A stretch of 64,000 nucleotides of DNA from Phallusia mammillata (Eukaryota), in contig OZ281494.1 in assembly GCA_965637545.1 (NCBI GenBank), forward strand, positions 35,774,001 through 35,838,000. Direction: 5' to 3'. The notes beneath the pieces are model-generated. The model saw only the letters and a program-made list of their open reading frames with translations. It searched no databases and was not told the origin of the DNA. Of this stretch, positions 11,201 to 56,366 are shown in pieces. Position 1 is the stretch's first letter, and each line of letters opens with the position of its first letter. Both the position numbers and the translations under genes were made by a program.

Positions 11201-14200
11201 CATGTTTTATACCACAGGCATGGAAATCTATGTTCCTAGGTAAAATAATGTGCTGTTTCGTTTCAAATCTGAAATTAATTCACCAATAAACCAATAGAAT
11301 TAACCACTGCATTATATATTTATGTGTAAATTCTTTATCACTATAAACACTATAATTGAGTGTGACAGGAACTGTTAATGTAAACTTGCTTTGATGTAGA
11401 GTTACAAGAGTCCATCAACCATTGGTGGAAGTGGATCCAATCGTAGCAGTTTAATGGACAGAAGGTAACGTTGCCACTTAGTTTTCAACCAGCATATTAA
11501 GGTGTTTGTACAATACTGTGCATATAATCCTACTGATCATGTTTGTATTTGTAGCAAGGTTGTTGCAATCTTTGTATAATACATAGTAGCCTGGCAATAA
11601 TAAAACTGTTTAAATTCAAAGTAATACTGTAAATTTAAAACTAGCTAATTTTTTTTTTCAGAATATCATTTGGAGGGTCACCAGCGTACACACCCAAGTC
11701 TTCTATTAAACAAAATCGCAGTAGATCTATGGTGAGAATTTTAAAATGTTTTAAGTAACTTAATATTTGCCTAAACTTTTTTAAAGAAATTACTTACAAC
11801 AACCATTGGGATTTTTATTGTGTTGCCGTCATAGAATTTTAGTGGGACAGTATTAAATTACAAGAGTGATGTAAAGCTGTGTAGTAAACATATGTTGGTG
11901 TTTGTCCTGCTTGCTTTGGTGAAAACATTAAATATATTTAAGTGCTTCATAAGTGGAAGTGGAAAATGAAAAATGGCAGCTGAACCAAGCATTGTCATTT
12001 CACAGCACTAACTAATTTGGCCAAAGTTGGGGTTAAAGTATTTTTAATAAGCCACTCTTGTTAGTTCATCTACACTTTCATTGCATTAAACCAGTGGTTT
12101 TCAAGTTAGCAATTGGTCGAAACACTGAACAAATACTACCACATGGCAAACTTTTATGTCTCATCTAATCATAAACAGTTTGATTTAGTATTTTCATAAT
12201 ATTAATGTTTGTTTCTCTTTCAACATGATACATAATGTATATGTAGACAAACAATTTTGACCATAAAAAAATTTATTTGTGAATTTTTTTCTTAGGTTTG
12301 TAAATAATCCAGCTATTAAGGGACAGTACAGAAAATAAATTTGGGAACACCACACTAAACCATAAGCGGTGGTTCGAATTAAAACAGAATTGCGTTTTGT
12401 TTTGTTATTCAGACAGTGGGAGATCTTCCAAGCACAACCAATGGGAGAACTAATGCAATGAAAAGAAATGGAAGCCACCAAAAAAGGTTTGAACTCCATT
12501 ACAATACAGCTATAAACTAACTTCAGAGGCAGTAAATTTTCTTTTACTGTTATTAATCAATGCAGTACTTTATACTTTAAGTTTCAGTAACTTAAATAGA
12601 GTAACTTTATTGCCCCAGATTTAATTTTAGCATCTGATACAAACACATGTTTTGCAGGGACCCATATGTGGAAGAAATGCTTGAAGCCCCAAGTAGTCAG
12701 GAATTACCTCGCCGAGCTGAGAAAATGAAAAGGCACTCTCAGAAAAGGCAACTATCTGGCGTTGACACCAGCAACCTTTTCGATGGATCAAATATGAGAC
12801 CATTCTCCAATGTTCAAAATAAGGCAAGTTGCAAGTGCTAGAGAATTTTTGGAGTGATATGACAACCTTAAATAAGCTGTTGCTGCCAGGCATAGTATCA
12901 AGTTTATAGAGCTATCCTTGTTTGGTAAAAATCATTTGCAAACCAAATTTAGGTGTTTTTTTTTGTTTTTTAACCACCTAATGCAGTAGTTTATAAGCAG
13001 GGGTGCACACAATCCAGAGGGGTGCAAAACCTGTACATTGGGGGGGAAGGACCCTAATTGTTCAGGGTTGGAAAATAATAACAACTTTTCACAAAACCTT
13101 ATAGGGGGTGGTTGATTATTTTAAAGCAAAATATGTAATAACCAACCTTCTAATATGTTTGCAGAGTTCACCATACGGTGCAGAACATCGTGAAGTCGTA
13201 TTATTTTATGTTTTTGCCCACTTGCCCTCATTGGATCTTCTACGATGCTCTTCCGTGTGCCATGAGTGGAGGGGTTTGTCACATGACCCACAACTCTGGA
13301 GTCGAATAAGCTTCGAAAATGTTTACCTCAATCCCAAGGTGAAATCTCACAACTACAAAGACTGTACTTTTGTTGTTAAAATGTTGCCAGGAAAGGCATT
13401 GAAAAACCATGTTATTTTTTTATCATAAATAGTCAAACAATTTTCCTACAGTGCAAAAACAATGTTGGCCGTTTTTTATTGTAGTTTTGTAGTACATTTT
13501 TTTGTTAGAACACTTTACTAGCAGAACGTTTTTACCGATGTACAAAGTCTAATACTTGATTTTTTGCAGCTTCTGCATTCTATTTCACATTGGGCCACTG
13601 AAACTTGCTTAATTAAACTGAGGAATATTGATGCAATTCACGATAAACAAGCTTCACTTGGTGAGTATTTAAGTTCATTCAATTATGGGCAAAGTTTTAC
13701 ACCACTGTTTTCAGACAGAAAGTGCTTTTTCTTGCAAATATTTTCCTGTTTAACATTAGGATGTTTTTACAATTACCTTAGTCCAGGGGTGTGCAACATA
13801 CGGCCCGCGGGCCAGTATCCGGCCCGCGGCACCTATTTTCGTGCCCCGCGCAGACTTCAAAGTACTCTATTAATTATAAATACTTTTTCCTGTTAGCAGT
13901 GGTTCTCAATCTTAAACGGACCGCGTACCACCCGACAACTATGTTTATCGCTGCGTACCACCTATCCTAAACCCTGTTTGAATGGATAGACCACGAAATA
14001 GGCCCATTTTCTCGCCTAGCATATTTAACAATTTCAAAGAGTTTCGCCCAAAACCTGGGCTGATCAGTTGGGTCAGTTGAGTTGCAATTTTAGATCGGAC
14101 ATAAATTAGGTATAACAGAAAGCTACTCGCGTACCACCTAGTACCACCTTCGAGAACCACTGCAGGGCTTCTCAAACTGTGGGTCGCGAAATATAATTTT

Positions 14201-26337: not shown

Positions 26338-28269
26338 GTCTATACGCATCATGTGTAAGTAAATCTAAGTCCAGCACCCGGTCACAAACTAATATGAAAT
26401 TCCCGGCGTGGTTTCAAACGTAGCCCAAGTCACCTAGCTAAACTAATCACAACATTTCAAGTGCTGTTTTAGATACTACATCTTGCAACGTTTTACATCT
26501 AGTTAGAAATCCATGTGGGATAAAACCCAGCGAATCTTAAACCTACTCCATGAACGTATTTTTTTATTACCCCATGTATGTTGTTTGATGTCTAGTGCCA
26601 ACATGCGGACAAAACTATCACTCCTACTGACTAATACAGGACGAATAACGTATCAATAAAATTAACATTCAGCCATGAAATAGAAATCAGCCTTACCTTG
26701 GGCGAGTGAAGTGGATTCGTCAGCGTTCCGCAAACCATGTAAACTAAATCAATATGTAGATGCCGCAGCAGTTGGTCTACACAATATATTCCATGTTGCA
26801 TCAACTTTCAAATTCCACTGCACTGCATTTAGCCACAGAGTAAACATTCCAACACATAACTAGACACAAACTGCTGTTGATTAATATTTGATGCAAACAA
26901 AATATTTATCACACACAAAAGTGATCAAACTTGTTCAAACTGCCACAATCCTATCTCTACATCACCAGCTGTTTTTTATTGCTTTCTTAACCCGTGCACA
27001 TAAAACCTTCCACTTGTTTTGCTGAAAAGCGAGATTTTCACAATTTCGACGCCGAACAATCAACGCGCTTCCACAAGCATTGTTACGTCACAAAAACGCC
27101 AGTTTATTTGCAAGACTTGAATTGAACCGAAGGCAGAGTTTATGTGTTGGTGAAAAACGCTCAAATACTTTGCACTGGTCGATGTGCGATGAATAAAACT
27201 GCAAACAATATGTGAATATATTTCAATTAAAAAAAAAACATAACAGAGACCATTCATGCCCCAACGAAAGATATATGCATTTTGAAACTGATTTAAAACA
27301 ACTTTTTTGTCTTGCTTCGGAAATGTAAAGCCAGTAAACATATGCGTCATCCTGCTCGACTTTTTTCTTTAGACTGATTGGATAACAGTGTTGCTATAAT
27401 AAATATCTTGGGCGATCTTAAACATGCGTTGTAACGCGTTACATAACATGTTGGTCACATGTTACCAACCTCCAAAGTGCCATTTTCATAAAATATCATC
27501 ACTATCACTGTGACAAAAAACCGCATTTTGTTTTACATTAAGTTAAAACAGAAAGTTGCACAGGATCCGGTTTCTTCAATAAAGTATTGTTAGCTTTCAA
27601 GGCGCAAAAATCACCGAACCTGGCCCGAAAAGCCCGGCCCGAGTAGAAACCTTAACTGATCTTATTTGTCACCAAACCAGCCAGTCCACCACGTTAAAGT
27701 TTCAAAACAAATGTGTTTGTAACAACTTTGTTATTTCTTACAGCAATAGACCACAGGAAACTGGCTAATTAAAGTGAAACAAGCTTATAAAGTTTTTGAA
27801 TCACTGCTTTGAATAATTAGGAAGGAAGTCTCTGGTATCAGATCAGATTGACTGGGTCGGGTGTGGTTTGTATGGAACGATCAACATTTCCATCTGAAAC
27901 ATACGAGAATCAATAAATCAAAGTTTCTGTCACCCAATAACCTTTGCTCGGGGTCAAATCGACACAAACCAGACCCTGTAGTGACGGATTAACAACATAA
28001 CTGCACAGTTGGTATTAAATCAATATGTTTAGGCATGCAACAGTTCTTTTAATATTTTGTAATTCATCATTTTTGTAACCAGATTTCACTCACAAACCAG
28101 AAATATACATAAAATTTTTGCTATACAACGCATTGCTTTTAGATGTTTACATTTTTTCAAAAAAATGGAACAAACAATAAAAATTTAAAATATACAATTC
28201 AATTGTTCTGCACTGTTACGTCACACGCACAAATAACTAATCATCAATAACAACAAACTATCAACAATT

Positions 28270-31200
28270 TCATGACGTCAGTGTTTCGTTTACAATCCGC
28301 AAATTGTTTTGGGTTCTGTCCATGAATCGCTTTCGCTCTTCCACGGTCATATCCTCAGATTTTCTGTAAACATTAATTGCTTCTCTGTAATATTTCACAG
28401 CGTCCTCATCACGTGATGTTTTCCCGCAAACGAACCCAAGGTTGTTCAACAAGTCACCGTAGACTCCATATTTGGCTGCATCATCTCCAAACTTGCGTTT
28501 CAACAAACTTATTCCTTCCCTAATAGTTTCTTCCCTCAGTTGATGGGAGCCGATCAAATTTAGACTGTATTCAATTTGATTCAAACACCTGGCCTCACAT
28601 TTACATCGAATTTTGTCGTCGACTTGTGGTAGAGTTTGAATCTGGTGACGCATGTCAGCGATCAAGGGGATCACGTGATCGCCCACAATCGGTTTGCTTG
28701 TGACGTCACTGATCATCATTGATTCGTTTGTTTCTTTCAATTCCCACGCACAATCCTTTACACCTCTCGCTGCGTCATCGGGACTTTGTTGCTTTGCATA
28801 GAAATCTGATGCAATATGGCAGAACAGGATCGACTCGGGATATTTATTCGCATTCCGAAGTTTTACGGCTAAAGTTGTCAAATCATTTGCTGTGGTTTTG
28901 ACTTGACCTTCAATTAACCTTGAAAGTTGTTGTTTTATTAAATGTGCTTCGTTGTATTTTCCCCGTTTCACAGAATCTGAGTATTTCTGGACCAACTGGG
29001 ATTTTTCGTTGCTTCCAGCTGAAAAAAGAAAAAAGCCTATAAATATACAAAGGTAGTTACAAATGCATTCTTTTACATGTTGGCTTTTCACGTCAATATA
29101 CGCCCTGCTGGGTACAAATATTTGCGTGACTAACAATTGTTGACAGATAGTTGTACTATGTAGCAGCAGAAAGGAGTACTAACCAATGGTGTCTAAAACG
29201 ATAAAGTCGGCTGACTATCGATGGCGGCTTATAATCCAGTGAATATGGCCAATTACAAAACAAGTGAAAACAGGAAGAAACAGAAACGAGGAAAACTTAC
29301 TTTTGGGTTGAAATATTTCATCGAGGTATGTGCTAGTGACGTCATCTAAAAAAATACATTTTTGTTTTTAGCTTTTTTTTCGGTGAATTACCTTTTGCGT
29401 TTTTCTTCTGATTATAAAAACAACGCACACATATAATTTATTAAGTTAGGTCAGTCAGTCACATTTAGTTAAACTACTTGACTTATTTGTCTTGTAAAGA
29501 ATTTCAGAACTGACAATATGACGTAACAATCCTTTTCACTCATGACGTAAGCAAGGTGGAACCGGAAACAGCACATTTACGCAATAGAAGGCCCAAAATT
29601 ATGGAATTCTATTCCTCAATATATCAAAGGCAACTCCCTCCACCTGTTCTGCAAATTATACAAACAAAAACTTTTGGATAACTATTTGACCCTGTGAGTT
29701 TGTTGCGTTTGTGCCATGCTTTTCATCCGCATTATTTTCGTGCAGTGAACATTTCGCTTGTATTCCTCTCGCCAGTTCCCTAGCAACCACGTGTTATATC
29801 TACTTACTTTAACAGGACCAATAGCGTACATCAATTATGTCATTGCAACCTGCGTACAATAACTAGTTTCCATTATCTAATTGCTCCAGTTGTGTGACTA
29901 TTATTTTTTCTTCTTTCCTGCCTACTTATATTTATTTCTGCATACGGATGGCTGATCTGATGACCGGTAAGGTCCCTTCGCCATCCGCCAGTTGCTTGAT
30001 TTTTGTATTTCATTGTATGCAATAACAGTATGCGCAACTGAAAATAAATATAATGAATGAATGAAGGAAATACCTCGTTGCTGTGGTGATGTGACGTCAT
30101 TCGCTGCTTCCATCTGTTGTGTTCGTGAACTTGGACCTCGTGGGGTGTCACGTGATGTGCTGGGAAGGTCGATGTTGCTTGCTGGTCTGCTCGATTCTGT
30201 CAATCAACAAACATCGGTTGAAAACACACTTGAATGGCGGAAGTGACGTAAATACATGACGTCATCGTGTTTAAACAGCGACAAAAGTCCAATAGTGGAA
30301 TATGTTTGTTATTTCCAAGTTTTGTGTCTCGTTATTCAACCAACATTCGATTTTACCTTCTGCTGTGTAAAATGTTTGGTCACGTGGTGAAAACTGGCGA
30401 ATCGGAACGAGTTGATTCTCAGCTGGTCTTTCAACTTTCAAATCCATTTGCCTCACAGAATTTGTCACTTGTTGCAGAATTGCTGCTGGGATTTGTGCGT
30501 CAACTAAACTCTGAAATTTGTCTCTAACTTCAGTTATATCTGGACGTTTTGTTGGATCGTGCTCCCAGCATCTTTTCATTTCTTCTTCCATCACTTTGGC
30601 TGCTAGTTTGTCGTCGTTGTTGTCGAGACTTGCTTTCAAATCATCAATCGCATCACAGTTTGGCCTCTTGCCGTTGATGATTGCATTTAACAAAGCAACT
30701 CCATCAGTTGGTGGATAAGGCTCTTCACAAGTAAGATACATATGGATTACCAAGCCAAACCCATACACGTCATGTCCCTTTCTCGGTTTCATTGTAATAT
30801 CTTCAAGTTTTTCTGGAGCGGTGTATAGAGCTGTGAATTGGATCTTTTCATCAGTGGCTGGAAGTCGAACAGTGGTTGATCCAGTTGTAGCAGCAAGCTT
30901 GGCCGAGCCAAAATCTGCCAATCTTGCGTGTAGATCTCTCGTCAGCAAGATGTTTTCAGGTTTCACGTCGCTATGAACCAATTTGTGACCAGGCAAGTTG
31001 TGAATGAAAGCTATTCCGTCCGCTGTTTCGACCAACTGACGAAGACGGAGTGGAATTCCTTTGGTGATTTCGTCATTGAGAAGGAAATCTCTGAGGTTAC
31101 CACCTTCATAATACTGCATGACAATTCCCATGCCACACGGCAGCGTCAACCAGCCATATGTCCTCACTACGTTTTCAGTTTGGGCGGATTGCAGCTTGCC

Positions 31201-32092
31201 TAGTTCTTTCATAACTCTGTTGAAATTAGAGTTAGACCGTTTGAGTCAGTCGTATACCAAAGACCAGACCGAGGGTAACGAACTAACGCGCAATCGCGCT
31301 ATTCTACAATCGACATGTGATGTCAGAAACGCCGAAAGTTATGTTAAATCGAGCCCAAATACCGGGGCTTTCAACTACATCTAAACAAGAGCAAAACGAG
31401 CCCAATTTGACTTTAATTACAACACGGTATGCAATGCTCATACATGAGAATAGATAAAAAGTGAGAATAGGTAAAAGTTTTTTGAAAGCATGCACTAAAA
31501 AGCGCAACCAGCAACACAAAGTCTAAAGCATTAATTTAAATATACATGTCACGACTGCATTAACTCGTCGTTGCAACCTGGTGCTGCAGTGCGGCCGCAG
31601 GTTGTGCACCCCTGTCTTAGACTATAGTATTTGGGAGGGAAAACCGCAACCCTGGCAACACTGTCCGCATTGTTTTGTCACACTGGCTTAATATGTTAGG
31701 AGAAAATAACATCACGTGATTGGTTCCACTCTGTTTTTGTTCGATCACAATCGTAAATTAAACTAGTGACGTAAAATGAATTAGCGTGGTGGTAAAAATG
31801 GACGCTTTTCCAAAACCAAAGTTGTATAGTTGAAAAACATACTTACGTATTTGTAAACAGTTTCTTAGCTTGCACTCCGCCATGGCATTCCATGACTTTA
31901 ACAGCAACTTTGTCGAGTTTTTTATGTTTTCCGACGAGAATCACTCCGAAACTTCCAGAACCCACAATACTTGACTTTGGGTCACACAGAATATCATCAG
32001 CATCAAATTCACCCAACTGAAAATTATCACAACATTTAACAAACTATAACTGAATTCCAAACTTTCTTACTTACATTAGATTGACTTGCCAT
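28270..32092 (-). CDS. RIPK-like (TKL) Ser/Thr kinase fused to a C-terminal helical/TPR domain, copy 1, about 654 aa, 6 exons
   Basis: Exons 32092-32075 (MASQSN), 32016-31847 (GSGSFG, VAVK), 31216-30357 (KE alphaC, HSDVKPEN, DFG, APE), 30196-30074 (S/P/T linker), 29345-29301 (45-nt micro-exon), 29018-28270 (helical; TPR-consensus LLNNLGFVCGKTSRDEDAVKYYREAINVY). All GT-AG with matching phases; total 1965 nt, open. Confidence 0.85.
29535..29700 (+). mobile_element. 3' end of a CR1/L2-group LINE in intron 4 of kinase-TPR copy 1
   Basis: Translates as AIEGPKLWNSIPQYIKGNSLHLFCKLYKQKLLDNYL, the G-P-K-L-W-N-x-x-P terminus of CR1/L2-group ORF2. Copy 2 keeps only the first part (about 42015-42090). 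Confidence 0.6.
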
Positions 32093-35000
32093 CTTTTTTT
32101 TTGTCACTTGAAGTTAAGGTTTTGAAAGCTTGCAAACTGTCAACCACTCCCTTATTTAGCAAAGTTTCAAAAGTTCCTCTCACAGCAGTGTGACGTTTCA
32201 TGAGGTTGGTTTCTCTTTTAAAGCCAATTGTGTCGTCACTTCCTGCCATCTTAAAGCTTAATGTTGAGACGACGTCAATTCCATTTCAAGTCAAGCGTTA
32301 CAAAACACCTTTTGTCAGCTCAATTATAACTCTTTTTTAATAGCCCATTCAAACGTCATTTATCAACTTAATTACATCGACTGTAATTATGGTGATGAGA
32401 ATGACGTCACATAAAGTGCAACAATTTAGTGCAGGTCCAGTAAGATCTAAAAAACATATCGTTCTGGAGTTCATATATTTTAAGATCGCTACAAATTCAC
32501 AACATCTCAAAATGTGAGTTTGTGTTGTTGATCCTTAACCTTTGGTGGAATGTTAACCAAACCATGCGCTCCATGTGGACATTTCAGGTAATACTGTTTT
32601 CCACTTCCACATTTTGAAATAAAGGTTTTGTTCAACCTGCCATGACAACTATTTATAGGATAAACAAGTTCCAGCTCTCAACACAACGAAACGTACAAAT
32701 CCATATGGAAAGCATGCGACCACCCCAAGCGCATGAGATAAGACGATGCTGCGTTACAACAACTAACGTGGTCACCCAACGTTTCCAAACAACAGACCGA
32801 GCATTAAACAACGTTTTCTTGTCACAAAGCAACAGGCAATGTCCCTATTGGATTTATGGGAACAAATGTAATGGAAAAATCGAGCCCATTATTCGCAGTA
32901 ACTATTATCTCCCACATTGTTGTATTAAATATACGTACAAAAATAAATCTTAAAGGTATAAAAAATCGTTTATTAAGGTAAGGTTTTAAAAGTTCGAAAA
33001 CTGTCAAGCACTCCCTTATTCAGGAAAGTTTTATCTAAGTTCAGCAGTGTGACGTTTCATGGGGTTTGTTCCGCTTAAGTAGCCAAGTATGACGTCGCTC
33101 AGTGATCTCGTACAAGTTGGTGGAGACGCCAGGTTCATTTTAAGCGTTACGAAAACACCTTGTGTCAGCCGAATTATAACTCTAGTAGCCATTGCGTGGA
33201 ATGAATTAAGGTTAAATATAACATGCCCCAAGTCTTTGTTGTTCGGGAACGTATTGTAGTATTCTGAAATCCCAATTTCGAACCCAAACAAACAAATTAA
33301 AACACTTGCTCTGTTTTATCGCATATCTCTTCGAAATTGTGTTTTTTGTTTGGTGTAAAGCCGTTGAATCGTGTTTTGCGTTCGTCGTTTCACTGGTTTA
33401 GAATATTTTTATTTTATTGTAAATAAATCCTGATAAGATTTCGATTCTTGTTTGGAACTGAATCGGTATAACGTTTTATTATATTGTCCAACCATAAACA
33501 CAGACTGATTCAAATGTACTGAAAGCCTCAGTATTGTATAACACTGAGTGTTAATAAGTTGCAAGGTTAAACCATTGAATGTTTAAAATTGTTTGACAAA
33601 ACATATAACCACTACCGACACCGCGTGGCTGACATGTGTTCCAGATTGGTCGTGTCTGATGGCCTCGTTGTTCCTTCTATCCTTGATACGATGTTTATTA
33701 TCAACATAGCGAATAAGCTGGCATCATACGTGGGCAGTATCTGATGTGATTACTCCACTGTCGAGCTGCAAAACACAATAATCGATGTTTTCATCAATTT
33801 TACAAGTTTCTGACGACTTCAATTCGCTACAACGATTTCGATTTGACCAGGTTGTTGATATGTCGTCACCACCGCCCCAAACCGCCCAATCGAATTCCGA
33901 GGTTGTCGAAGTAATTGAGCAACATAAACGCGGTGGCAAGACTCAGTCGATCACAGATCCAACATGAAATCCGATCCGGGCGATCGCGTGAAATTCGTTG
34001 ATCAACCAACAATCTATCTACTAAACGGGTATGGGAGCAAAATCGATGCGACCATTATTATGCAGAAGCTCATTTTACCCTGTTTCAAACGAACCTTCAG
34101 TAGTAACATAAAGTTTAAAACAATTCCAATTAATCACACCAAACTTCCACGATGAACTATTTCAACGACACCCATATATATTCTCGCAGTGTTAAAAGGT
34201 TTAGGGCAAGCATTTAGTTGGGCCACACATATTGTCTAACACGTCAGGACACCACAGTCACGTTGGCGCGTTCACACAAAGAAAGGGACTGTTTGTAATG
34301 TGTTTGTGATGCATATTAGCTTGAGTAAGGCTTCCTATATTTCAAAGTGACAATAATTCCAATGTGCCTTTTCATCTGTTAAACTCTTATTGCGCCGAAG
34401 CAACCGACAAAGTCAATCGGCATCTTATCACGGACAAAAAAGTCGGTGACAAAAGCGAAAGCCCAGTGAAACCGCCTCGCGAGTTTAACAACCCGACGAA
34501 ACGCCGCATGTACAAACCAAGTCTTCTATTTAACTTTACTGCGCGGTGTTCGCAATCGCCAGCTTGAGGCATCCCACGAGACCAGCCAACGCGATTCAAT
34601 GCAGCCAGCAGAGTGGTCGACATGCACGTGATATCCCATGTTCATCACGTGACAGTGATTCAGGATTCAACCGAACGGCGAGAGATGAAATCCATGCTGG
34701 CCAAGCTGGACAAACTGTGCAGCAAACAGCTTCCATGTTTCGTCGCGAACCCGGCCATGTCAGCCAAACTTCGCTGAAATACCTTGTCTATTAAGTACAG
34801 GGGAAGAAAAGCACCGTTCGGTGGTTCCCCAGTGACGTCGATTGAAATGTGTCAATCATTCTACTACAGTTTCACCCACTTTGAATAGGAGGTTTGTTTA
34901 AAAGATTTTTTCTCTGTGCGCTGTGAAGTAGAAACGTGGTGTTGATGAGACGTGGTAGGTTACAATGGAACATTTTGTGTCAGTATTAGGTTGTTTTAGT

Positions 35001-37340: not shown

Positions 37341-40214
37341 TGGAAACCACGACCGCCAACACATAGTAGAGTTGTAAATCGGGTCGGTTTTTTCAGGTCG
37401 GGTTCAGTTTACTTCAGGTTACATTCGGGCTCGACACCACATTAGTGACGTAGAATCACGTTGGCAAATAAACTTTCAAATCTAACTCGGGATTTATTTT
37501 AAGTACATTTTGGGTTCGAGTCTTAATTTTGTGTCAGCTTACTCTGCTACATACGTTTCAGTACATATGTGCGCGGTAGCAGGTTGGGCATGGTTTTAAG
37601 GATCATTTTAACGTTTAGGGAAATACCAACAGCAGCTACAAGACACAGCGATGGACTAATACCGATGCAGAAAAGTCAGTTCTTGACAACTACTTAACAT
37701 TACAACGCCGCCACAATGATTTCAACGTAACATCTGTTGTAGCCAGCGAACTAACGAGAATCGTGGCGCATTCACCAGCGGTGCAGCATCAGTTACACGA
37801 AAACGTACATGCTATTAACTCTGCTTGCTACATTTAACCAATGCACATTGGAAGTTGCGATGCCTTTAGCTTATCTTGCTTTGTATTGCGTTGTTGCTTG
37901 CGTTTTTTGTTTCTTTTTTTCTACCTCGTGTATTCAAACTGTGATTTAAATGTCGTTTACCATGTTGAACCTAAATAAAACGTTCTATTGTATAAAACTG
38001 TTGTATAAAGAATACAAAAAATATTGTGCGTTTTTGCAGCTGTTTTTCCCATTAAGCTAAAGGAAATTGAACCGAAATACCACATCGGTATTTAGTCGAA
38101 GCGTTGAAGAGAGAAACAAAGTGTTAAGGACTGTTTTTGTCACCCCAGCAACATCACATAACTGAACTTGCCCAACAAGTTTCCCCACAATCATCAACAT
38201 GTTTCACACAAGTACTTTTTGGATGCGATTTTGCCACCTCTAATCCAATTAAACCGAGTAGTAATGTCAATGCCAGAGTTGTTAGTCGGATCCAAATTTC
38301 GTTTCCCGTAATTCGGGCCTAGATTCACACTCGGTCAAATTTGTGTCAAAATTTCAACTTGTATTATGGCTTAATTCGGGATTAAATTCAAAATCAACTC
38401 GGGTTCGGGTTCGCATGTAACTCTGGTCCATGACCAGTGCAGTGCGATGGAGGCTGTGCCCATGTCATGTTGGTTTGCACATCTTATTTCGGGTAAAGCC
38501 ATTTAACAAAGCACTCACCTAACAAAAACCCTGCGAATCTCAAACCTACCCCATCTACGTAATGTAACCTAATATGTGGTTGCATCTCTAGCGCCAACAT
38601 TCGGACAATAATATCACTGCTATACCGACTAATACAAGACGGTTGACGTATCAATAAAATTAACATTCAGCCATGAAATAGAAATCAGCCTTACCTTGGG
38701 CGAGTGAAGTGGATTCGCCAGCGTCCCGCAAACCATGTAAACTAAATCAATATGTAGATGCCGCAGCAGTTGGTCTACACAATATATTCCATGTTGCATT
38801 AACTTTCAAATTCCACTGCACTGTATTTAGCCACAGAGTAAACATTTCAACACATAACTAGACACAAACTGCTGTTGAATAATATTTGATGCAAACAAAA
38901 TATTTATCACACAAAAAAGTCAAACTTGTTCAAACTGCCACAATCCTATCTCTACATCACCAGCTGTTTTTTATTGCTTTCTTAACCCGTGCACATAAAA
39001 CCTTCCACTTGTTTTGCTGAAACGCGAGATTTTCACAATTTCGACGCCGAACAATCCACGCGCTTCCACAAGCGTTATTACGTCACAAAAGCGCCTGTTT
39101 GTTTGCAAGACTCGAATTGAACCGAAGGCAGAGTTTGTGTGTTGGTGTAAAACTCTCAAATAAAATTGCGTCATACAAAAATAAGACCTTAAATGAAAAT
39201 TTACATCGCAACGGTTGATTGAACAAAGCTCGTTCTCACTCAAGCGGCCTGGGTTTCCATGTAACCAACACTGACGCATTTGCAGACGAAATATTTGCTG
39301 CAAAAACTCGAATTACATCTCACGATCGCCGAGAGCACTATTATGACGTCACAGATGAATCGCGTCGCCTGAAGCGACTGAAACAATCGCTTAAATTCCA
39401 AAGGAAGATTAATCTTTAAAAAAGTTAAGCCCGAATTTATGCAGGTTTCGTTGCTTTCACAATTTTGCGGCGTTTCTGTGTTGCCAGGATTTAAGTTAGC
39501 TGCGCTATACAAAGGAATGCTGCTCGTGATTTCTGTCAAAGTTCCACTGCAAGTTCGTTAACCTTCCTTGCATGGTGAACCAATAGGTTACCTGGGATAA
39601 AAATGCTTTTTTTGCATTGGTTTGTCAGTGAATTTTACGTTTTTCAATTTGCAATACTCTGAAGAAACATAAAGTGAAAAAGTTTTAGAATAATACAAGG
39701 GGATAAGAGCAGTTTAAACCAGTTTCAGTATTTAAAATATTTAGTTTGGAAGATCTGCATTATATGTGAGTCCTAAAGGCAATGTAGAAAACCAGTAACA
39801 AATTATTCAATGTTTTTCAGCGAGCAGAGAATTGAAAACCAGGAATCATTATGAAATTGGTGTTTTCTTTGTTGTTCCTTGTTGTGCTTGCAGCCGTGAT
39901 CGAAGGTTAGTGTGAAAACCGATGTCGAGTTTGGGTGAGCAGCAAATGTAACATGTTATGTAAGGAACGGGTTAAGCTTGCGCGGGTCTGCGTTAAACTT
40001 CAATAAGGTTCGAGAAGGAGCAGAATTATAAAAACTAATTATCACACTGGTTCGGGTAACGTTATTACAGGGTTCAAAGCGTTTATAGCAGTGATTCTCA
40101 AACTGTGTGAGTGATTTCCAATTGTGTCGCGATTTTAGGGGATGACATAATGTGCATGATAAAGTAGAAACCTTCTTTGATCTCCTTGTTTAAAGCTGAA
40201 GTAACGTTTATGTT

Positions 40215-40292
40215 TCAAAATACAAATGCTTTGAAACCCAAAAAATATGTTTTTTTTCATATTTTTTGGGTTTCAAAGCATTTGTATTTTGA
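40215..40292. repeat. Perfect 35-bp inverted repeat with an 8-T loop
   Basis: TCAAAATACAAATGCTTTGAAACCCAAAAAATATG (40215-40249), T8, then the exact reverse complement (40258-40292). Confidence 0.9.
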
Positions 40293-40587
40293 TTTTTCTT
40301 GTAAGTGAAAAAAAAAAACGTTTCAACACTGAATTGCTGATCAATAAAATCCTTGGTTTAAACCTGTAACGTTTTTTTTCAAATTAAGTTAAGTTTAGTG
40401 CTGAGATTTCATCTCAATATAAAAATAAACATTTATAGCTTTGCTTTATAAAACAAAGTGAATCAAAATCGGAAAATACCAATGTACATTCAATTGTTTA
40501 TCACTGTTACGTCATACATATTACAAAACAAATCATTATTCACAACAAATAAATACAATAGGGTGACGTCATAATGACCCTTTTGGT

Positions 40588-43500
40588 TTATTTTTTTTGC
40601 ACAATCCGCAAGTTCTTTTGACTATTGTCCATGTGTCGCTTTTGCTGTTGCTTGGTCAAATCCTTAGATTTTCTGTAAGCTTTAATTGCTTCTGTGTAAT
40701 ATTTCACGGCCTCCTTATCACGTGATGTTTTCCCGCAAACGAACCCAAGGTTGTTCAACAAGAGACCGTAGACTCCGTATTTGGCTGCATCATCTCCAAA
40801 CTTGCGTTTCAACAAACTTATTCCTTCCCTGATAGGTTCTTCCTTCAGTTGATGGGAGCCGACCAAACCTAGACTGTATTCAATGTAATGCAAACATCTG
40901 ACCTCACATACACATCGAATTTTGTCGTCGACTTGTGGTAGAGTTTGAATCTGGTGACGCATGTCAGCGATCAAGGTGGTCACGTGATCGACCACAATTG
41001 ATTTGTTTGTGTCGTCACTGTTCATCATTGATTCGTTTGTTTCTACCAATTGCCACGCACAATCCTTTACACCTCTCGCTGCGTCATCGGGACTTTGTTG
41101 CTTTGCATAGAAATCTGATGCAATATGGCAGAACAGGATCGACTCGGGATATTTCTTTGCATTTCGAAATTTTGCAGCAAAATTTTTCAATTCATTTGCA
41201 GTGGTTTTGACTTGACCTTCAATTAACCTCGAAAGTTGCTGTTTTATTAAATTTGCTTCGTTATATTTTCGCCGTTTCACAGAATCTGAGTATTTTTGAA
41301 CCAACTGGAATTTTTCGTTGCTTCCAACTGAAAAACAAAAAGGCACATTATCATTTTTTGACAGTTTTAAACGCACATTAAGCTATATGCTGTTAAAAGT
41401 CCACCAAAAAGTTTACATCAAACTGATGGGAAGGATATTTATATATTTATTTTTATATATTGTGAGTTACTCATTTTCAACACACACTGATAGTTTATTT
41501 TTGGAGGCATGGTTTTCCCATAAACGATGAAAATTGTGACACATCAGTACGAAAACTTGAAAAATATATAGTGCTAAATTATGACAAGTTTTTTCCCACA
41601 TTATTGCCAAAATTTCAAACAATTTCGTTAAAATTTCTCCAGAAAAAAATTATTTTGACAAGAATCAAAGCACAGCTGTCCCACGACAACAAAAGACACT
41701 GAACATGTATATTGTAAATAATTGATGTAAAAAAAGAGTGCTTCAGTGGAAATTACTAAACAAGTGGAAGACAGGAAAAAACAGAAACGAGGAAAACTTA
41801 CTTTTGGGTTGAAATATTTCATCGAGGGCTTTGCTGGTGATGTCACCTAAAAACATGAACAAGTTTGTTTTTTGATACTGTTTATGAAAACCAATTAACG
41901 ACAAATTAAACTGCTTAAAACAACGCACACATAAAATTGATTAGGTAGGGCCAGCCAGTCACGTTTAGTTAAAACTAAACGACTTCTTTCGGGTGTAGCG
42001 AACTTCAGAACTGACAATATGACGTAACAATCTACTAACTTAAGACGTAAGCCAAGCGGCACCGGAAACAGCATTATTATACGCAATAGAAAGAAATACC
42101 TTGTTGTTGTGGTGATGTGACGTCATGCGCTGCTTCTATCTGTTGTGTTTGTAAACTTTGACCTCGTGAGGTGTCACGTGATGTGCTGGGAAGGTCGATG
42201 TTGTTTGCTGGTTTGCTCGATTCTGTCAATCAAAAAACATTGGTTGAAAACTCACTTGAATGGCGGAAGTGACATAAATACACGACTTTATCATGTATGA
42301 ACAGCGACAAAACGTTTATAAGCTAGAAAAATGTTTGTTATTTGCAAGTTTTGTGTCTCGTTATTCAACCAACATTCGATCATACTTTGTGGTGTGTGAA
42401 ATGTTTGGTCACGTGGTGAAAACCGGCGAAGCGGAACGAGTTGATTCTCAGCTGGGCTTTCAACTTTCATATCCATTTGCCTCACAGAATTTGTCACTTG
42501 TTCCAGAATCGCTGCTGGGTTTTGTGCGTCAACTAAACTCTGAAATTTGTCTCTAACTTCAGTTATATCTGGACGTTTTGTTGGATCGTGCTCCCAGCAT
42601 CTTTTCATTTCCTCTTCCATCACTTTGGCTACTACTTTGTCCTTGTTGTTGTCGAGACTTGCTTTCAAATCATCAATCGCATCACAGTCTGGTCGCTCTC
42701 CGTTGATGATGGCATTCGTCAAGGTATTTATTTCTGTTGGTGGATAAGGCTCTTCACAAGTAAGAGACATATGGATTACCAAGCCAAATCCATAGACGTC
42801 GTGCTCTTTTTTAGGCGGCATTGTCACTTTTTTAAGTTTTTCAGGAGCGGTGTATAGAGCTGTGAATTGGATCTTTTCTCCAGTGGCTGGAAGGCGAACA
42901 GTGGTTGATCCAGTTGTAGCAGCAAGCTTTGCCGAGCCAAAATCTGCCAGTCTTGCGTGTAGATCTCTCGTCAGCAAGATGTTTTCAGGCTTCACGTCGT
43001 TATGAACCAATTTGTGACCAGGCAAGTTGTGAATGAAAGCTATTCCGTCTGCTGTTTCGACCAACTGACGAACACGGAGTGGAATTCCTTTGGTGATTTC
43101 GTCATTGAGAAGAAAATCTCTGAGGTTCCCACCTTCATAATACTGCATGACAATTCCCATGCCACACGGCAGGGTCAACCAGCCATATGTCCTCATTACG
43201 TTTTCAGTTTGGGCGAATTGCAGCTTGCCAAGTTCTTTCATGACTCTGTTGAAATTAGTTAATTCAAAGTCAGCCGCTCACCAAAGATCAGACCGAGGGT
43301 AACGAATAACAATGCGCCATTCTACAATCGACATGTGATGCCAGAAACGCCTAAAGTTATGTCAAAGCGAGCCCAAAAGCCGGGGCTTGAAAAATTTTTT
43401 AAAAAGCAGCAAAACGAAACCCAATTAGACTAAAATTACAACACGGTATACAATGCTCATGCATGGGTAAAAAGTGTTTTATGTAAGCCCGCACTCAAAA

Positions 43501-44654
43501 AGCGTAACCAGCAACTCAAAGTCTAAATCAGGGGTGTGCAACCTTTTTCGTCGGTGGGCCATATAATCAATTTCGTACATCAAGCGAGGGCCACACAATT
43601 TTTTTCATGTACCGTATTTACACGTTTTTTTACCCTTCTGTTGGTGCGGCTTGCATTATAATATCATGTCGATATTATTTCCACCCCCTGCGTTTTGTTT
43701 TATTTTGCGTTTAAAATCAACTACAACACTCGCAACCCAGCACCCATTGCGAATAGAAGACCATAGGTCTGGGTGAATTAACTTCCATGCGCTGGTTTAG
43801 CTTATTCTTGTTACGTATAGCAACTTAGGAAATTCCGAAACCTAGCGCGGATTTTTTGTCAAAAGTGCATTTTTACTTGTTCTAAATCAGAGTGTTGTTG
43901 AGGGCCACACTAAACGGCTTAGCGGGCCGGATTGTGGCCCGCAGGCCGCGGGTCGCACACCCCTGGTCTAAAGCATTTGTGCGAGAAAACCGCAACCCTG
44001 GCAACACGTGATGTTAAAGCGTGGTGTTAAAAATGTACAAATGATTTTGCAAACAAAGTTGTAAGCAAACTTACGTATTTTTGAAAAGTTTCTTAGTTTG
44101 CACTCCGCCATGGCATTCCATGACTTTAACAGCAACTTTGTCGAGTTTTCTATGTTTTCCGACGAGAACCACTCCGTAACTTCCAGAACCCACAATACTT
44201 GACTTTGGGTCACACAGAATATCATCAGCATCAAATTCACGCAACTGTAAAAATGAATGAATTTACAAACAGGCCTGTTGCAAAAATTTGGTCAAGCAAA
44301 GCGGGAATATAAGTAACGAGACAAAAACCTTAATCTTTTTTTTGGCGTTTTGCAAAAAGCAATGACATGTTTGGCTGCACAAAGCTCGCCAAACCAGCTT
44401 AAAACGTGCAAAGTCAATGAATTTACAAAGTGGCCTGCTGCAATACATAAGCAAAGCGGGTTTCATAACGATCCAACAACGTTAATATGTTTCAGAAGTT
44501 TTACAAAATCAATTGCTATGGTGGGCTGCACAAAGCTCGCCTACAAACCCGCTTAAAACGTGCAAAGTCACGCATGCAAACATAATTATGCAGAATCAGA
44601 TTGTGTTTGGTCCAAAATACTTACATTAGGTTGACTTGGTTGAGCGCTTTCCAT
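40588..44654 (-). CDS. RIPK-like kinase-TPR gene, copy 2, about 655 aa, 6 exons
   Basis: Exons 44654-44625 (MESAQPSQPN), 44244-44075 (GSGSYG, VAVK), 43245-42386 (HNDVKPEN, DFG, APE), 42222-42100, 41846-41802, 41327-40588. Exons 2-5 have the same lengths and phases as copy 1; total 1968 nt, open. Confidence 0.85.
43529..43965. mobile_element. hAT MITE, 437 bp, in intron 2 of kinase-TPR copy 2
   Basis: TIR CAGGGGTGTGC(A/G)ACC. TSD GTCTAAAT/GTCTAAAG (7/8). Copy 1 has a single GTCTAAAG at the equivalent site (31521-31528). Confidence 0.85.

Positions 44655-46994: not shown

Positions 46995-56366
<9,372 letters not shown>

Follow-up and report, generated by a model that had tools for sequence, protein, structure and literature searches.

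Does the minus strand of a stretch of the Phallusia mammillata genome encode a RIPK-like kinase that continues, in one chain, into a tail of TPR repeats, and what would such a tail do for the kinase? The stretch (the window) is a piece of 64,000 nucleotides (nt) from contig OZ281494.1 of assembly GCA_965637545.1, positions 35,774,001 to 35,838,000; all coordinates below count from its first letter. An earlier note on this DNA had picked out separate open reading frames (ORFs) for a kinase and a helical domain, and had proposed that they are spliced together into one protein, with a variable TPR sensor as the gate of its kinase. We found that six exons at 28270-32092 on the minus strand (gene A) splice into an open coding sequence of 1965 nt that encodes 654 amino acids (aa), with an N-terminal kinase, a linker of about 100 aa that includes the products of a 123-nt and a 45-nt exon, and a 248-aa C-terminal helical domain. 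A second copy, paralogue B, lies 12.4 kb upstream on the same strand. The two are tandem, intact RIPK-like kinase-linker-TPR genes, and we judge it slightly more probable than the contrary that the tail serves as a docking or assembly module that recruits the kinase.

Gene structure and transcripts

In gene A, every intron begins with GT and ends with AG, and a pyrimidine-rich tract lies ahead of each AG (exons are listed in Table 1). The junction between exons 1 and 2 is in phase 0, that between exons 2 and 3 is in phase 2 and the last three are in phase 1, so the earlier statement that all junctions are in phase 1 holds for the last three and fails for the first two. The proposed splicing of the kinase and helical ORFs into one protein through the 123-nt linker exon and the 45-nt micro-exon was borne out; we found the same arrangement, with GT-AG introns, in both paralogues, where the small exons are likewise 123 and 45 nt long. 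Because these two exons are symmetric (phase 1 on both sides), either can be skipped without a frameshift, and such skipping would permit linker isoforms. The end of exon 3 encodes a conserved post-kinase tail with a QLVPxRxFS motif, and this tail is kept in the Phallusia protein P0003. A Pfam scan gave no family for the linker encoded by exon 4, and the LDEIFQPK motif of the micro-exon is identical in gene A and paralogue B.

Table 1. Exons of gene A and of its paralogue in the window
Feature	Position	Strand	Description
Gene A exon 1	32075..32092	-	18 nt; ATG at 32092-32090; phase 0 donor GTAAGT
Gene A exon 2	31847..32016	-	170 nt; Gly-loop GSGSFG and VAVK catalytic lysine
Gene A exon 3	30357..31216	-	860 nt; kinase from alphaC Glu to subdomain XI
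Gene A exon 4	30074..30196	-	123 nt, phase 1-1; Ser/Thr/Pro-rich linker; from splice sites and RNA contig
Gene A exon 5	29301..29345	-	45-nt micro-exon, phase 1-1; encodes ...LDEIFQPK
Gene A exon 6	28270..29018	-	749 nt including stop; 248-aa TPR module, 11 helices
Paralogue B	40588..44654	-	six exons as in gene A; intact 655-aa ORF
Paralogue B exons	44654-44625, 44244-44075, 43245-42386, 42222-42100, 41846-41802, 41327-40588	-	

As evidence of splicing in RNA, we aligned assembled contigs from RNA-labelled runs (15 runs of the same organism were found) on positions 27900-32400. One contig of 465 nt crosses three junctions, from the TPR exon through the micro-exon and the linker exon into the kinase exon, and the letters left unaligned between its sides sum exactly to the predicted exon lengths. 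The joints in the RNA contigs (29017/29301, 29341/30072, 30198/30369 and 31216/31847) are the predicted junctions when a few divergent letters at the edges are allowed, and the last of them, found in a second contig, equals the predicted junction of exons 3 and 2 exactly. The loose ends of the contigs past exon 2 match exon 1 of paralogue B (44625-44654). At most variant positions the contigs differ from both A and B, and they therefore derive from another copy or from a divergent allele that shares this exon plan; they fix the exon plan and transcription for the family, not for copy A specifically. The fusion is also supported by P0003, an mRNA-derived Phallusia mammillata entry of 359 aa that runs from kinase subdomain XI through the linker into the same C-terminal domain. 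P0003 is 35% identical to residues 276-648 of gene A and spans the join between the post-kinase tail and the module.

The two genes lie in a duplicated block (approximately 26522-32023 for copy A and 38525-44251 for copy B) that is 78-92% identical with introns included, and the tandem duplication is therefore fairly recent. Within this block, a 650-bp segment 3' of each paralogue (26522-27167 and 38525-39162) is 91.7% identical, which is above the coding exons and suggests a shared 3' element or a repeat.

The sequence around gene A also carries a CRE/ATF-type palindrome, TGACGTCA, that is present in 22 copies in the window as compared to 0.95 expected from shuffles (shuffle maximum 3). Copies occur in exons, introns and flanks alike (examples are at 28273, 28701, 29337, 30092, 30257, 32402, 48261-48442 and 49629-49735), and several of them are within coding exons of gene A.

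Kinase domain and C-terminal module

The domains of gene A were searched and folded separately rather than as the full-length spliced protein. In the kinase, we located all of the catalytic residues that the earlier note had listed: the Gly-loop GSGSFG (residues 25-30) and VAVK (43-46, with K46), which are supplied by exon 2, the further exon that it had described, the alphaC glutamate E67, HSD (144-146), N151, DFG (164-166) and APE (196-198). Exon 3 also encodes the catalytic loop HSDVKPEN (D146, N151) and the CW...RP signature of subdomain XI. The kinase exon matches the Pfam families PK_Tyr_Ser-Thr (8e-28) and Pkinase (1.4e-27). When we compared it with solved structures by phmmer, RIPK1 (92 bits, 3e-25), RIPK4 (80 bits, 2e-21), RIPK3 (70 bits, 2e-18) and RIPK2 (62 bits, 5e-16) outranked every other kinase in the PDB, as the proposed RIPK affinity would have it, and were followed by SYMRK (59 bits), TAK1 (57 bits) and then CTR1, MLKL and IRAK4. 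The alignment with RIPK1 spans the catalytic loop, the long activation segment and the C-lobe. The catalytic loop is non-RD (HSD/HND), like that of RIPK1 (HKD), and the long activation segment contains a Ser/Thr-rich stretch, TTGSTTV. By sequence, the catalytic domain is thus closest to RIPK1-4 among solved kinases and is that of a TKL-group cytosolic Ser/Thr kinase.

The tail is unlike those of vertebrate RIPKs, as had been claimed. Pfam gave kinase and TPR hits only, with no match to a death domain, CARD or ankyrin repeats in gene A, and a motif search for the RHIM tetrad [IV]Q[IVLC]G found it in neither copy. No NACHT or NB-ARC NTPase was found in any exon of gene A by Pfam scan, and no membrane helix was predicted.

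TPR repeats in the tail of gene A fall below the Pfam threshold (the best match is one TPR_1 repeat at residues 188-217, with 21.1 bits against a cut-off of 27.8), and the homologues P0001 and P0005 exceed the cut-offs for TPR_12 or TPR_10. The TPR identity that the earlier note had assigned is nevertheless clear in the fold. An AlphaFold2 (AF2) model of the module built from a 61-sequence alignment has 11 helices, with a predicted local distance difference test (pLDDT) of 97.9 and a predicted template modelling score (pTM) of 0.93. In Foldseek, the top matches to this model are the TPR domains of LGN/Pins and of kinesin light chains KLC1/2, together with designed CTPRs; the LGN/Pins and KLC matches have a probability of 1.0, a template modelling (TM) score of 0.5-0.62 and an identity of 13-17%. 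Among AlphaFold DB clusters, the sole close neighbour of the model is a Phallusia fragment. The model shows the tail to be a TPR solenoid of the KLC/LGN long-repeat type with five and a half hairpins. In an AF2 model of P0003, which contains the kinase tail, linker and module, the linker has a pLDDT below 50 and appears as a disordered segment that does not dock into the TPR groove.

To see which other proteins carry the module, we searched the whole library with HMMER and found 747 homologues. Of these, 129 have E<=1e-10, and most matches cover residues from about 5 to 245. In the alignments, the module is C-terminal, about 240 aa long and marked by the motifs HVIPLM, CLHxIE and YGxLLNNLG. 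All named homologues are ascidian proteins called 'uncharacterized protein' (from Ciona, Phallusia and Styela), most of which are without a kinase, and the unnamed ones are on gene-sparse, eukaryote-like metagenome contigs. A RIPK-type kinase was found ahead of the module in none of the 28 homologues scanned, and the 8-10 kb around the module exon contain no kinase exon at two Ciona loci (L001, L002), one Styela locus (L003) and 14 metagenome loci (L004-L017); the metagenome locus scan with an 8-row module alignment gave 6 loci. Searches with region 343-586 of P0151, with P0003 and with an alignment headed by P0002 gave almost nothing beyond their own Phallusia queries.

Three Phallusia proteins (P0002, P0151 and P0156) have a receptor-like, single-pass layout: after a Cys-rich ectodomain with many N-glycosylation sites comes one hydrophobic membrane helix, and then a basic juxtamembrane segment that leads into the module. 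When the module sequences were placed in a tree by maximum likelihood, the copies in the window grouped with P0002 and P0155 (support 93/80), and then with P0003 (87/69). P0155 belongs to the same group as the receptor-type proteins, and a hydrophobicity scan found no membrane helix in it.

Several further features of proteins with the module were seen. One of the three receptor-like proteins bears the source name 'E-selectin-like'. The two Ciona loci each have tandem module stretches (12244-12900 and 20845-21567 in L001; 8313-9023 and 11416-12099 in L002), and in L002 there is an overlapping gene call with a faint ZU5 match. The Ciona protein P0001 (1277 aa) has four copies of the module in one chain. 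P0144, an unrelated protein of 1186 aa from a Logan contig, has an N-terminal TPR array, a protein kinase and a Ribonuc_2-5A (KEN) domain; one of its TPR copies resembles the module, and it has the layout of an RNase L/IRE1-type effector with TPRs where ankyrin repeats would be.

Between the two paralogues, the ratio of nonsynonymous to synonymous substitution rates (dN/dS) is 0.28 for the kinase and 0.84 for the TPR module; by this ratio, the kinase domain is under purifying selection. The 46 substitutions between the modules of A and B cluster in helices 3, 6, 7, 10 and 11, and helices 1, 2, 4, 8 and 9 are almost invariant. At the position of the HVIPLM motif, copy A has HVIPLI and copy B has HVTTLI, in which the family-conserved Ile-Pro has become Thr-Thr. 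The C-terminal end of the copy B module (40588-41327) also differs from that of copy A and is shorter.

Proposed role and its alternatives

Gene A resembles RIPK1-3 and RIPK4/ANKK1 in having at its extreme N-terminus a kinase of the RIPK1-4 kind, and RIPK1 in particular in its non-RD loop. As in RIPK4 and ANKK1, a disordered intermediate region is followed by a C-terminal interaction domain, which in those two proteins is also a helical repeat array. It differs from the RIPKs in that its tail is a TPR solenoid rather than ankyrin repeats, a death domain, a CARD or a RHIM, and its orthology to any one of them is putative. Tunicates are reported to lack RIPK1 homologues in the sense of proteins with both a RHIM and a death domain (PMC12119088). 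In amphioxus, RIPK-like kinases have expanded with LRR, DEATH, Zalpha and other partner domains, among which no TPR partner is listed, in a survey where tunicates were unsampled (PMC9573974). Like these expansions, gene A combines a RIPK-like kinase with a new partner domain in a single lineage of invertebrate chordates.

Kinase-TPR chains as such are already known. In plant BSKs (RLCK-XII), one cytosolic chain contains a TKL-group kinase and, C-terminal to it, a TPR domain that reportedly regulates the kinase and partner binding. The domain order is that of gene A; however, BSKs are N-myristoylated RLCKs of the IRAK/Pelle type and their TPRs are short and canonical, whereas gene A begins with MASQSN and has no Gly2, its kinase ranks with RIPKs, its TPR is of the KLC/LGN type, and no BSK is among the 60 solved-structure matches listed. 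The architectures are alike by convergence, and gene A does not belong to the BSKs. Among bacteria, Hanks kinases with TPR tails (PknG-type, Pkinase plus TPR_12) also have a kinase followed by TPRs in one chain, and clusters of such proteins turn up as structural neighbours of module-like TPR proteins; in contrast to gene A, they belong to an unrelated kinase subfamily in bacteria, and the module shares with them only the generic TPR consensus. The combination of a RIPK kinase with another helical repeat is likewise known from RIPK4 and ANKK1. New here are the pairing of a RIPK-like kinase with an ascidian-specific TPR module and the presence of this module on receptor-like proteins. A literature search found no paper on a RIPK-like kinase-TPR architecture or on the Ciona LOC identifiers, in agreement with the earlier note, which knew of no characterised chordate RIPK-like kinase with such a tail.

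We infer a docking or assembly role for the module from its fold kinship, its distribution and the lack of a switch domain: the nearest folds are peptide-binding scaffolds, the module ends receptor-like, adaptor-sized and kinase proteins in one lineage, as death domains do, and the protein has no switch domain on which it could act. The TPR solenoids of KLC and LGN/Pins hold extended peptides in their concave groove, and intramolecular motifs regulate both; these TPR domains are the best fold matches to the tail of gene A, although at 13-17% identity and in proteins without a kinase, and peptide binding by the ascidian module is putative. In the proposed mechanism, the module would stand where vertebrate RIPKs have a death domain, CARD, RHIM or ankyrin repeats, and its target in partner proteins would be either a peptide motif or a second module of the same kind. 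The membrane-receptor-like proteins with the same module on their cytosolic tails are among the candidates. Once docked, the kinase would accumulate at a complex, undergo trans-autophosphorylation of its long Ser/Thr-rich activation segment and pass the signal on.

Several points weigh against this reading. The binding partner, kinase activity and expression context are predicted only. The RNA evidence consists of assembled contigs from runs labelled 'RNA?' that are unlike both copies, so that transcription of gene A is not proven. RIPK affinity was read from a best-hit ranking and not from a tree, and in the Atlas the language model places the kinase among generic TKL kinases, most of them from fungi. 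Support for the clade of receptor and kinase modules is moderate (93/80 and 87/69), and the Sushi match in the ectodomain of the Phallusia receptor-like proteins is weak (E 0.003). The module dN/dS of 0.84 and the loss of Ile-Pro in copy B could simply reflect relaxed constraint. TPR domains, moreover, are not classic homotypic modules.

A bolder proposal, which we put forward tentatively and consider improbable as it stands, is that the module of about 240 aa is an ascidian-specific signalling connector that does the job of death folds and RHIMs on receptor tails, adaptor-like proteins and the RIPK-like kinase. Such a connector would wire surface receptors to the kinase in animals where canonical RIPK1 has not been found.

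We think it doubtful that the TPR domain is instead a variable ligand sensor, comparable to IFITs or to the TPR arms of NLR/STAND proteins, that keeps the kinase inactive until it binds a non-self or danger ligand. In PP5, a TPR domain is known to autoinhibit the catalytic domain fused to it, and the same is reported of plant BSKs; a sensor would also fit with a module family that is much expanded in ascidians, with a module that evolves faster than the kinase between the paralogues, and with substitutions that are clustered in a subset of its helices. However, dN/dS below 1 gives no sign of positive selection, and relaxed constraint fits the pattern equally well. NLR/STAND-TPR sensors have a central NTPase, whereas gene A has neither this nor another switch domain and joins kinase to TPR by a linker of about 100 aa that is disordered in the P0003 model, with no intramolecular docking. 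The closest folds are peptide-binding scaffolds of the KLC/LGN kind and not IFIT, and the module is also on receptor tails and on many proteins without a catalytic domain, where there is nothing to gate. The gated sensor of the earlier note is unsupported: we found no evidence of either ligand sensing or gating.

It is very improbable that the kinase and the TPR exon belong to two genes, with the joined RNA a read-through product or an assembly chimera. Most TPR-module exons elsewhere do lack a kinase exon within 8-10 kb, the kinase exon could stop 28 codons past its donor if the intron were retained, and the RNA evidence comes from contigs and not from single reads; against this, four consecutive phase-compatible GT-AG junctions hold one frame in both paralogues, the small exons have no other long ORF, the 465-nt contig spans three junctions with P0003 covering the same join, and the linker motif LDEIFQPK is kept in both copies. 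Equally remote is a chaperone-docking TPR of the PP5, CHIP or Hop kind that tethers the kinase to the EEVD tails of Hsp70/Hsp90: proteins in which a TPR that binds chaperone tails is fused to a catalytic domain are well known, but no PP5, Hop or CHIP is among the listed top 50 PDB or listed top 30 Swiss-Prot matches, the repeats are of the long KLC/LGN type and match TPR_12 and TPR_10, and the module is ascidian-specific, not conserved.

Tunicates are the closest living relatives of vertebrates, and a RIPK-like kinase with a lineage-specific TPR module would show rewiring of the RIPK scaffold in the sister group of vertebrates. The presence of the module at the ends of receptor-like proteins, and in many ascidian proteins that lack annotation, offers a testable candidate link from receptor to kinase in ascidian immunity or allorecognition, and the module may be an uncharacterised signalling connector common to kinases and membrane-receptor-like proteins of sea squirts. 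The TPR fold also gives a first structural label to an ascidian gene family whose named members are all 'uncharacterized protein'.

Neighbouring reading frames

Two further ORFs on the minus strand lie near paralogue B. Just beyond it, 46995-49568 is an uninterrupted frame of 857 aa that is rich in Ser, Pro and Arg and matches no Pfam family. The ORF at 55262-55723 encodes a kinase Gly-loop and VAVKK, with ZAK/MAP3K20 (MLT) as its best matches among solved structures (4e-14), and is probably the exon in which the coding sequence of a ZAK orthologue begins, at a distance of about 10 kb from paralogue B.

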